DNA of 64,000 nucleotides from positions 496,001-560,000 of the forward strand of contig NW_003314290.1 of assembly GCF_000143415.4 (NCBI RefSeq). Direction: 5' to 3'. This document shows, piece after piece, positions 53,275 through 56,200 of the stretch. How positions within the stretch are numbered: position 1 is the first letter of the stretch; the number at the start of each line of letters is the position of its first letter. Source of the stretch: Selaginella moellendorffii. Lineage: Eukaryota > Plantae > Lycopodiophyta. The notes below the pieces were generated by a model. The model had not been told where the DNA came from, ran no database searches, and worked only from the letters and a program-made list of their open reading frames with translations. The translations under genes and the position numbers were made by a program.

Positions 53275-56200
53275 ATGGTGTTGTCAGTCCATGCTGCCAT
53301 TTCCTCACACCAGCCCCTCTCGGCCTCGCCGGAGCAGCGACTTCCATCGCCTTCCAGTGGAGCTGCGCCATCGGCGCTGCCCCTAAGCAGGTAATCCATC
53401 TCTTTGATTCCTCCCAAGGCAATTCGCGCCTCTGGAAACCCCAATCTCCATCTCCATCGATTGATTTGGATGCGCAGAGCGCCGATTTGCAAGAAATCCT
53501 TGATCGCCTTATCTCACGCCGGCGGGAGCATCGCCAGGAATACTCGCTGCGGCGTCACTGTAGAGGTTCTATGATCGATATTTTGGAAGAAATATTCTCA
53601 ATCGAGCAGTGCTTTTCCAGGCGATTGGCGATATCATGGCGGCTACTGGATTGATATCCGAGAGTGAGGCTTGGATCGATTTGAAGGTGAGTGTAGCGTC
53701 TTCTCTTTACCTTTTCTTCTCGCGAGCTGATTGATCGGACAATGTGTGTAGGATCATGTCGCGGAGATCAACAAGACGCATTTGAGGGAGCTTTTGACTG
53801 ATACGTCTCGATGCGAGGGGATGATCAAGTAAGCCTTGACAAAAATATAGAAAATGATTGTATGACAAAATTTGTTTTTCGTGGCGCAGGGAGCATGACG
53901 GGATATTGATAGACTTTTCTAGGCAGCGAGCAACGCAAAAAACCATGGAAAAGCTTTTTTCGCTTTCCAAGGTTGGTTGCATTTTTCCTTTCTTTTTGGC
54001 TCTATCCCCATTCTTGTTTTGGACAGGAAGCAAAGCTGGAGGAGAAAATAAAGAAGATGTTTATCGGAGAACACGTAAAGAGCCTTTGCTCCTCCTAATC
54101 TTGAAAATCTTGATGATCACCATTCTTTTGTTATAGATCAATAGCACCGAGGATCGGGCGGTTCTTCATGTGGCGCTTAGAGCTCCAAGAACTGAACACA
54201 TTTTCGAGAGTGGTCGGGATGTTGTTCCAGACGTCTGGGAAGTACTGGACAAAATCAAGGATTTTTCAGATAGAGTGCGAAGTGGCACTTGGGTAAGTGA
54301 CCCCAAAACTTTTTCTTTTTGTCTTTTTTTTCTTTCTTTTGAGGTAGTTTGCTAATCTGCGTTTATCTATTAGGTGGGAGCTACAGGGAAGCCCCTAACA
54401 GATGTTGTAGCGATAGGAATCGGTGGAAGTTTTTTGGGCCCTCTTTTTGTTCATACAGCTTTGCAAACAGGTCTTTTGAACCAACTTCAAGCTTCCCTTT
54501 TTAACGCTGTGTCCGTGCAGAGCCTGAGACTGCCAAAGCTGCGCGTAATCGAAAACTTCGATTGTAAGTATGTTCTTGCGTTTAAGATTTTTAAGCGTTT
54601 CTTTTTTGTTTAAGCGCAGCCTTTCAAATGTAGATCCTATTGACGTTGCACGGGCTTTGAATGGTTTGAAGCAAGAAACAACCCTTGGTATGTGCGTTTT
54701 GTTGAAGTTTGTATAGTTAATTATTCTCTCACTTTGTAGTGGTGATCGTTTCCAAAACCTTCACAACCGCGGAAACTATGTTGAATGCAAGGACTGTGCG
54801 GTCCTGGATCACATCGGCGCTTGGGTATGTGTTTTAACACTGGCTGGATTGTGTGACTGGTTGATGTCTGATGTTACAGGTCAAATGCAGTCTCTAAGCA
54901 CATGGTTGCTGTCAGTACAAACGTGAAGGTGCGATTAAAATTTTCCTTTTGCGAACTTTGTAGCGTGATCTTGTGACAGCTCGTGAAAGAGTTTGGCATC
55001 GACCCTGAAAATGCGTTTGCTTTTTGGGATTGGGTTGGAGGTCGCTATAGTGGTGAGTAAATCTGAGCAAGAAGCCTCCTGTGCTTTTAACTAATGTCTC
55101 GGTCGATTCAGTATGCAGTGCTGTTGGGGTGCTCCCATTGTCTCTACAATATGGATTTGAGAACATTACCAAGTATGCTATCATTGTCTAGTCAACAGGG
55201 TTTTACAAACTTGCACTATAGGTTCCTCGAGGGAGCTTGGAGCATTGACCAGCATTTTCGTACCGCACCTTTTGAGAATAACTTGCCTGTAAGTATATTG
55301 CTGATATCAGTGTAGAACTTATGAAGTGTCATTTTCAGGTTCTATTGGGTCTATTGAGCGTATGGAATGCGAGTTTTCTTGGATGTCCCGCACTGGTACG
55401 GTCCCACAGCATTCTATGTGAGCTAAATTGCTGCATGATCAACCATGTAGGCTATCCTGCCATATTGTCAAGCCTTGCAAAAATTGGCTCCACATATCCA
55501 GCAAGTACGTACTTCTTCTCCATGTTTATAAAGTAAACAATTGTGCCTTGCCTTTTTACAGGTGAGCATGGAAAGCAACGGCAAGGGAGTCACGATTGAT
55601 GGAAAAGTACTCGATTATGAGGCAGGAGAGATTGACTTTGGAGAACCAGGGACCAATGGTCAGCATAGCTTCTACCAATTAATCCACCAGGTATGCTATA
55701 AAATTCAAGTAGTATGTTCTTGCCCTTTTGACTTGTTCTCGTGCGTCCCAGGGTAGAGTTGTTCCATGCGACTTCATTGGAATCATCAAAAGCCAGCAAT
55801 CAGTGTTTTTGAGAAGTAAGAAGATTTTTATTACTCTCGTTACCGCAGGCTGACGATTCAAACATTCAGATGAGATTGTCAGTAACCACGACGAGCTTAT
55901 GTGCAATTTTTTCGCCCAAGCAGATGCGTTGGCTTATGGCAAGGTCAGTAAGGAATCTCTCGTGTTTCTTTCACGGTCTAAATGTTTCTTCTTCAGACCC
56001 CCGAGGAACTTCGAGCGGAAGGTGTCCCGGATTATTTGATTCCTCACAAAGTAAGTTCCTGAAGGTTCTTTCCTTGCGGCTCTACAGTTACCTTGTTCTT
56101 GCAGACTTTCACCGGCAACCGTCCATCCCTGAGCATGCTGCTACCAACTCTAAAGCCATACACAGTTGGCCAGCTTCTAGCTTTGTATGAGCACCGGATC

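Follow-up and report, generated by a model that had tools for sequence, protein, structure and literature searches.

A PgiC-type phosphoglucose isomerase of Selaginella moellendorffii with a spliced N-terminal leader, a probable organelle-import presequence

In the textbook account of plant carbon metabolism, which comes from seed plants, a cytosolic phosphoglucose isomerase (PGI), PgiC, stands beside a cyanobacterial-type plastid enzyme, PGI1. We analysed a stretch of 64,000 nucleotides (nt) from the lycophyte Selaginella moellendorffii (contig NW_003314290.1, positions 496,001 to 560,000 of the forward strand, assembly GCF_000143415.4; hereafter the window, in whose numbering all positions are given unless otherwise stated) that contains a gene for a PGI of the cytosolic type preceded by 73 residues spliced in frame from upstream exons. 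Which compartment does such an enzyme serve, and where does its leader come from? It had been proposed from the DNA sequence of the window that this one PgiC gene supplies both cytosol and plastid through alternative starts, or that the enzyme has been retargeted. The reading to which we incline, with some reserve, is that the long gene encodes an organelle-targeted, probably plastid, PGI of the eukaryotic type, and that a second, short Selaginella gene serves the cytosol.

The enzyme, its spliced leader and its transcripts

By its sequence, the long gene encodes a PGI of the eukaryotic "cytosolic" (PgiC) type, in agreement with the original prediction. Three single exons scored 61.6, 68.0 and 89.1 bits with the Pfam PGI family PF00342 (cut-off 22), and exon 54137-54292 was matched over its full length by PGIs in the PDB. 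The core showed 78.5% identity over 489 residues with PgiC from Rhododendron, the relatives of which are angiosperm "cytosolic" enzymes of 568 residues, and the nearest named proteins were all of the PgiC type. When 59 sequences of the green lineage were placed in a tree, the long PGI fell within the streptophyte clade with a value of 98 in the Shimodaira-Hasegawa-like approximate likelihood ratio test (SH-aLRT), its placement inside that clade not being settled. The protein thus grouped with PgiC-type enzymes and was not assigned to the cyanobacterial-type PGI1, of which the comparison contained no sequence. Seed-plant cytosolic PgiC (560 residues in Arabidopsis, typically 568 in angiosperms) belongs to the same family and clade, with 72-78% identity, but it has neither the leader nor the C-terminal tail of the Selaginella protein. 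The seed-plant form starts at the canonical Met and has about 560-575 residues without a presequence, whereas the Selaginella protein has 657 residues, 73 of which lie ahead of that position: in the alignment the Met encoded by ATG 53636 falls on the initial Met both of seed-plant PgiC and of the short paralogue in Selaginella.

The gene model consists of 24 exons with 1974 nt of coding sequence (657 residues and a stop codon); all introns are bordered by GT..AG and the frame closes (Table 1). The two upstream exons contribute 116 + 88 = 204 nt of coding sequence, so that the frame runs into exon 3 in phase 0; the in-frame ATG 53636 lies 15 nt, or five codons, into this exon. An in-frame TAA at 53230 ends the frame 5′ of the leader, and in the haplotype of the window no in-frame ATG therefore precedes ATG 53275. 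The context of ATG 53275 is good (G at -3, G at +4) and that of ATG 53636 is strong (A at -3, G at +4). Between the two there are zero further in-frame ATGs, and the sole out-of-frame ATG, at 53291, has a weak context and opens a frame that ends at 53384-86, before 53636.

All detectable mRNA includes both extra exons. The RNA data covered 52950-54350 and came from two RNA-seq runs, used as raw reads, and from the RNA contigs of two separate studies. The joint between 53390 and 53478 was found in 98 and 183 reads of the two runs, and that between 53565 and 53621 in 66 and 116 reads, and each joint was also present in both contigs, which confirmed to the exact coordinate that the upstream exons are spliced in frame at GT-AG borders as predicted. 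Read depth in the two leader exons (91-110 and 174-211 in the two runs) was equal to or above that in core exons (64-116 and 100-165), and the bins of introns 1 and 2 were at about 0. No joint bypassing the leader was detected at the 3% reporting threshold in the two runs, and no molecule starts piled up between 53279 and 53640 in the RNA reads. Alternative transcription starts are a common route to dual targeting of plant enzymes, and at the transcript level the proposed dual supply would call for two transcripts, the short one starting in intron 2 or exon 3. The equal depth of leader and core exons, the empty introns and the lack of internal starts and of leader-bypassing joints reject this version, as does the same joined form in the contigs of two further studies, and we regard it as hardly credible.

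At position 53936 an extra A following a run of A was seen in 5/115 and 21/162 RNA reads, most likely due to library or sequencing slippage and not to editing.

The exon peptides of the 24-exon model were all found in order in the RefSeq protein XP_024536787.1 (657 residues), with gaps only at split codons. This protein carries the database name "cytosolic", and its annotated coding range on scaffold GL377594.1, in a record identical to window 50275-59590, corresponds to 53275-56590. The 73-residue extension is already present in RefSeq and is not new to the public record. The original prediction had described it as hidden, which holds for the plain open reading frame (ORF) track and for the older, 2010-era Joint Genome Institute (JGI) models EFJ22776.1 and EFJ30865.1 (562 and 564 residues; locus and allele), all of which miss it, the JGI models beginning at the internal Met, but does not hold for RefSeq. 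The two JGI models were also seen to end by read-through into the last intron (56436-56465), so that the final exon is missing from them as well.

An allele of the long gene is present in the second haplotype (XP_024528833.1, 668 residues, GL377575.1), with the same neighbour genes. In this haplotype A>G at 53252 together with a 2-nt deletion at 53260-61 puts ATG 53240 in frame and adds 11 residues; both variants were present in RNA reads. At the G/A site 53524, A was found in 52/115 and 124/229 RNA reads; the two alleles were thus about equally frequent, and therefore both haplotypes are expressed. Both alleles keep the leader frame, and the leader differs by a single Gly-to-Arg change. Haplotype differences across the leader amounted to 1/204 exon bases and 0/142 intron bases, which is too few to judge selection.

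The composition of the leader bore out the claim that its make-up resembles that of a transit peptide. It is rich in Ser, Ala and Pro and poor in acidic residues (Ser+Thr 20.5%, Ala 15%, Pro 9.6%, Asp+Glu 4.1%, Arg+Lys 8%) and has a net charge of +3; the first 19 residues are uncharged and the first acidic residue is found at position 20. For contrast, Asp+Glu make up 19% of the first 137 residues of the core. In an AlphaFold2 model based on 44 homologues, the predicted local distance difference test score (pLDDT) was 27-35 for residues 1-70 and below 50 for residues 1-76, with a confident fold from about residue 78; the C-terminal residues 642-657 also scored below 50. The leader thus shows what is looked for in a transit peptide: an N-terminal segment within the range of 40-100 residues ahead of a conserved core, which here starts at Met74, abundant hydroxylated and small residues, rare acidic ones, a net positive charge, an uncharged start and, in the model, no stable fold of its own. 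Judged from its sequence and from analogy with homologues, the segment of about 73 residues would be an organelle-import presequence, most likely a chloroplast transit peptide.

A mitochondrial presequence, or one serving both plastids and mitochondria, would also fit the positive net charge, the scarcity of acidic residues and the lack of a fold in the model, and outside seed plants the targeting peptides of these organelles are hard to tell apart (PMC12531127). However, Arg and Lys reach only the 8% given above, there are seven prolines among the first 41 residues, and the highest helical moment, by a crude measure, was 0.42 and was found at residues 49-67, near the C-terminal end of the leader. 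The early prolines and this low moment speak against a classical mitochondrial amphipathic helix, with the reserve that the measure is crude and the distinction weak in non-seed plants. In addition, the homologue from Chlamydomonas is listed as a chloroplast protein (PMC5700999). A mitochondrial or dual destination is therefore improbable in our view.

Leaders on the same enzyme across the green lineage

Searches were made first with single exons, which gave mostly fragments, and later with the database protein XP_024536787.1, which agrees with the gene model at every exon; one of the fragments, a PGI of algal type with a long N-terminus, also served as a query and reached Selaginella and its kin. 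A search with an angiosperm PgiC as query returned angiosperms only. Leaders that match the Selaginella one in composition, 40-97 residues long, were found to precede this enzyme in chlorophytes (Chlamydomonas PGI1 Cre03.g175400, Volvox, Coccomyxa, Trebouxia, Scenedesmus, Ostreococcus and Pycnococcus), in the streptophyte algae Chlorokybus and Klebsormidium, in the liverworts Marchantia (A3QVX4), Riccia and Calypogeia, and in the moss Ceratodon. The question, raised along with the original prediction, whether other seed-free plants share the extension can thus be answered with leaders of the same kind in liverworts and a moss.

The PGI1 of Chlamydomonas reinhardtii (Cre03.g175400, 644 residues) has a PgiC-type core that is 73% identical to the Selaginella protein. 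Like the latter, it carries a leader of the same composition, of about 65 residues, and a Met at the junction of leader and core. It is to our knowledge the only PGI of the alga, and PGI activity in Chlamydomonas fractionates with chloroplasts. The protein is assigned to the chloroplast by prediction and was recovered together with the chloroplast chaperones HSP22E/F (PMC5700999). Unlike Chlamydomonas, Selaginella is a vascular plant and has a second, leaderless PgiC-type gene.

Among land plants, long PGIs were found in Marchantia polymorpha (A3QVX4, 653 residues), Riccia fluitans (652 residues), Calypogeia fissa (674 residues) and Ceratodon purpureus (642 residues). Compared to the Selaginella protein, their cores are 75-80% identical, their leaders are 67-97 residues long, and the C-terminal tail is held in common. 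The leader of Riccia, like that of Selaginella, is split over two upstream exons, the second intron lying a few codons apart, and in Selaginella, Marchantia and Riccia the canonical Met is directly preceded by (V/I/T)-E-A. Leader motifs shared with the liverworts had been suspected by eye and were dropped after a shuffle test gave them no support: the liverwort and moss leaders could not be aligned with the Selaginella leader above shuffled controls. A lack of sequence similarity between leaders is as expected for transit peptides. In the literature, no localisation was found for a long-form PGI in bryophytes or lycophytes.

The long-form gene of Ceratodon (CM026438.1) occupies 2.5 kb for 642 residues, with one exon (L003:3648-4172) spanning residues 26-200 uninterrupted where Selaginella has six introns; this gene is possibly retro-copied or intron-depleted.

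The C-terminal tail, GK.QL.YPEP.DVFP, was found to be conserved from chlorophytes to Selaginella and to be absent from seed-plant PgiC. Many chlorophyte tails end with C-x7-C followed by RPPTSY, and both cysteines are lost in Selaginella and in the liverworts. The two-cysteine tail of chlorophytes recalls the redox-sensitive C-terminus of CP12 and the tail of GAPDH-B.

N-terminal extensions of other kinds were also encountered. PgiC from gymnosperms (conifers and others; five proteins) carries a different extension in its first 55 residues or so, with a hydrophobic, membrane-anchor-like stretch and, after it, a conserved segment LPSS..AL..(C/Y/S)(K/S)LS..AAES(I/L)SMA; a form of 566 residues without the extension falls in the same 90% cluster. 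In the glycosomal PGI of trypanosomatids (PDB 2o2c, 1t10) the exon match lies about 48 residues further in than in the 557-residue mammalian enzymes, but both the organelle and the extension differ from those considered here. Another parallel concerns algae with red plastids, for which Grauvogel, Brinkmann and Petersen reportedly found in 2007 that the plastid GPI derives from a duplicate of the cytosolic enzyme. This would be, as in our reading of the Selaginella gene, a eukaryotic-type GPI with an added N-terminal presequence for the plastid; it differs in its bipartite signals for complex plastids and in its independent origin.

The Selaginella gene would thus belong to a long, leader-bearing form of PGI that occurs in green and streptophyte algae, in liverworts and in a moss. 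Since this enzyme carries leaders of the same kind in lineages from chlorophytes up to liverworts and one moss, it is simplest to suppose that the Selaginella leader was inherited from algae and kept, and not newly gained; gain and loss were judged from this distribution. The same distribution speaks for inheritance over the proposed retargeting in Selaginella.

It also bears on whether the upstream exons are translated at all. If they were an untranslated, spliced 5′ leader, the protein would start at 53636 and be cytosolic, as in the older JGI models with their internal Met; the conservation of the leader is limited to composition, and 73 open codons are not improbable by chance (P about 0.14 with the local base composition). 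On the other hand, a scanning ribosome reaches ATG 53275 first and finds it in good context, and the frame is open over two joints in both haplotypes, one of which extends it by means of a 2-nt indel. The encoded segment has the composition of a targeting peptide, unlike the core, and in each of the independent lineages the same enzyme is preceded by an open leader of similar composition. We consider an untranslated leader quite improbable.

A second Selaginella gene and the supply of the compartments

Selaginella has a second PgiC-type gene (XP_024528402.1 / XP_024522023.1, GL377703.1), which encodes 574 residues without a leader and is 77% identical to the long form. In genomic DNA an in-frame stop is found 129 nt upstream of its ATG. 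Besides, this ATG is preceded at a distance of 18 nt by an AG acceptor (L005:3983-4000), in frame with it (A-S-P-G-R-Q-M), at about the same position as the acceptor of intron 2 in the long gene, which lies 15 nt before the internal ATG (A-I-G-D-I-M). The common intron position suggests that upstream exons were once part of the short gene, or still are.

With two genes at hand, a division of labour between them is simpler than the original proposal that one PgiC gene serves both compartments. Translation from the first in-frame AUG at 53275 would open the long frame and give a precursor with the leader, which may be imported into plastids and cleaved near the V-E-A/canonical-Met junction to release a stromal PGI of the eukaryotic type. 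The leaderless paralogue of 574 residues, to judge from its sequence, would supply the cytosol.

One mRNA of the long gene might instead yield two proteins: an organelle precursor from ATG 53275, and a cytosolic PGI from ATG 53636 by leaky scanning or by re-initiation after an upstream ORF (uORF). The internal ATG lies exactly at the canonical PgiC start and in strong context, no in-frame ATG intervenes, and the frame of the out-of-frame ATG at 53291 closes before 53636. As to the 5′ end, one RNA contig begins at 53194, read depth climbs from 53232, and six molecules of one run end at 53262; the stretch before 53275 is thus possibly only about 13 nt long, and longer transcripts include a uORF ending 2 nt ahead of ATG 53275. 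A Met within the 15 residues before the mature core was found in 23 of 31 leader-bearing homologues, with about 10% expected and shared ancestry not corrected for, and the frequency of Met in the rest of the leaders was 0.7%. Furthermore, Marchantia, Riccia and Calypogeia each showed a single PgiC-type protein, the long one, and no leaderless liverwort paralogue was found among the matches listed. Several observations count against two starts: ATG 53275 is itself well placed, the second haplotype has a further upstream ATG in frame, and the separate leaderless gene of Selaginella makes the need for a second product not obvious. The count of Met ignores shared ancestry, and this Met could be a leftover of an ancestral start; the evidence on transcript starts consists of six molecules in one run. 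On balance two products from this mRNA seem unlikely to us.

A broader version of this idea, which we put forward as a doubtful proposal, would take the leader-bearing PGI of the whole green lineage to be an ancient two-start gene providing a plastid precursor and a cytosolic enzyme from one mRNA. Such a gene would persist in Selaginella, liverworts and at least one moss beside a later-acquired PGI1, and seed-plant PgiC would be a remnant after loss of the leader.

The presence of PGI1 itself has to be considered in this connection. The plastidial PGI1 of land plants (Arabidopsis At4g24620 type) carries a transit peptide (PMC9806618; PMC11976288). It catalyses the same reaction as the long PGI of Selaginella and, if the plastid reading is right, would act in the same compartment, but it belongs to another lineage, of cyanobacterial affinity, whereas the long PGI groups with PgiC. 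A PGI1-type gene is, by analogy, probably present in Selaginella as well, because the family has been reported in Zygnematophyceae and Marchantia; nothing on a PGI1-type gene in Selaginella was found in the literature.

Several points weigh against a plastid-targeted long PGI beside a cytosolic short one. The assignment to the plastid is based on the composition of the leader and on analogy with algal homologues, and in early-diverging land plants the targeting peptides of plastids and mitochondria are less distinct than in eudicots (PMC12531127). With its chance probability of about 0.14 the open frame alone is unremarkable; the case was built on splicing, composition and homologues. When the Selaginella leader was compared to those of other lineages in the shuffle test, the best z was 2.4 (24/1000, uncorrected for nine tests), so that common descent of the leader was inferred from its distribution because no sequence similarity exceeded that of shuffled controls. 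Whether the duplication that gave rise to the long and short genes is old or recent was not decided by the tree (approximately unbiased test, p 0.218). Finally, a separate PGI1 family has been reported as distinct in land plants, from Zygnematophyceae upward (PMC11135702), and Marchantia has a plastidial enzyme of the PGI1 type (PMC12751066); a second plastid PGI beside PGI1 might be redundant.

Features of the locus and significance

The PGI gene shares its promoter with a divergent neighbour on the minus strand, which encodes a TFIIIC subunit (TFIIIC B-block protein) and has its ATG at about 53122, about 150 bp upstream. An Rfam scan of 52500-57200 detected no known RNA family. Elsewhere in the window, an ORF on the plus strand (58812-59078) was seen to encode a protein of 88 residues that begins like a signal peptide and contains a run of Pro and many cysteines, and a look-up of its exact product returned no gene on record. 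A run of N of about 900 bases, an assembly gap, is located at 31800-32700.

Table 1. Coordinates of the long PGI gene and its 5′ region in the window.
Feature	Position	Strand	Remarks
5′ leader of the PGI mRNA	53194..53274	+	transcript start somewhere in 53194-53262
Upstream ATG and 10-codon uORF	53240..53272	+	stop of the uORF 2 nt before ATG 53275 (this haplotype)
Extension exon 1	53275..53390	+	116 nt: ATG, 38 codons, 2 nt
Intron 1	53391..53477	+	87 nt, GT..AG; RNA depth 0 in bin 53420-53466
Extension exon 2	53478..53565	+	88 nt; allelic G>A at 53524 (Gly to Arg)
Intron 2	53566..53620	+	55 nt, GT..AG; bin depth due to 5 exon bases at its edge
Exon 3	53621..53686	+	last 5 extension codons, canonical PgiC ATG at 53636-53638, 16 more codons
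Whole PGI coding region	53275..56590	+	24 exons; matches XP_024536787.1; PF00342 on three exons
Last exon, C-terminal tail	56492..56590	+	tail common to algal, bryophyte and both Selaginella forms; not in seed-plant PgiC

The point made by this locus is a modest one and does not concern a new kind of system: the gene is one more member of a widespread and probably old leader-bearing form of PGI. Its interest lies in the persistence, in an expressed gene of a vascular plant, of the algal arrangement, in which a PGI of eukaryotic type bears a predicted import leader; "cytosolic" database names and the older gene models obscure this. Where such names are trusted in assigning compartments or reconstructing metabolism in lycophytes and bryophytes, the enzyme would be misplaced. 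If the long form is plastidial, two plastid PGIs that differ in origin may be at work in land plants without seeds, which would bear on how the fluxes of starch and of the oxidative pentose-phosphate pathway were rewired at the rise of PGI1, close to the time when plants moved onto land.

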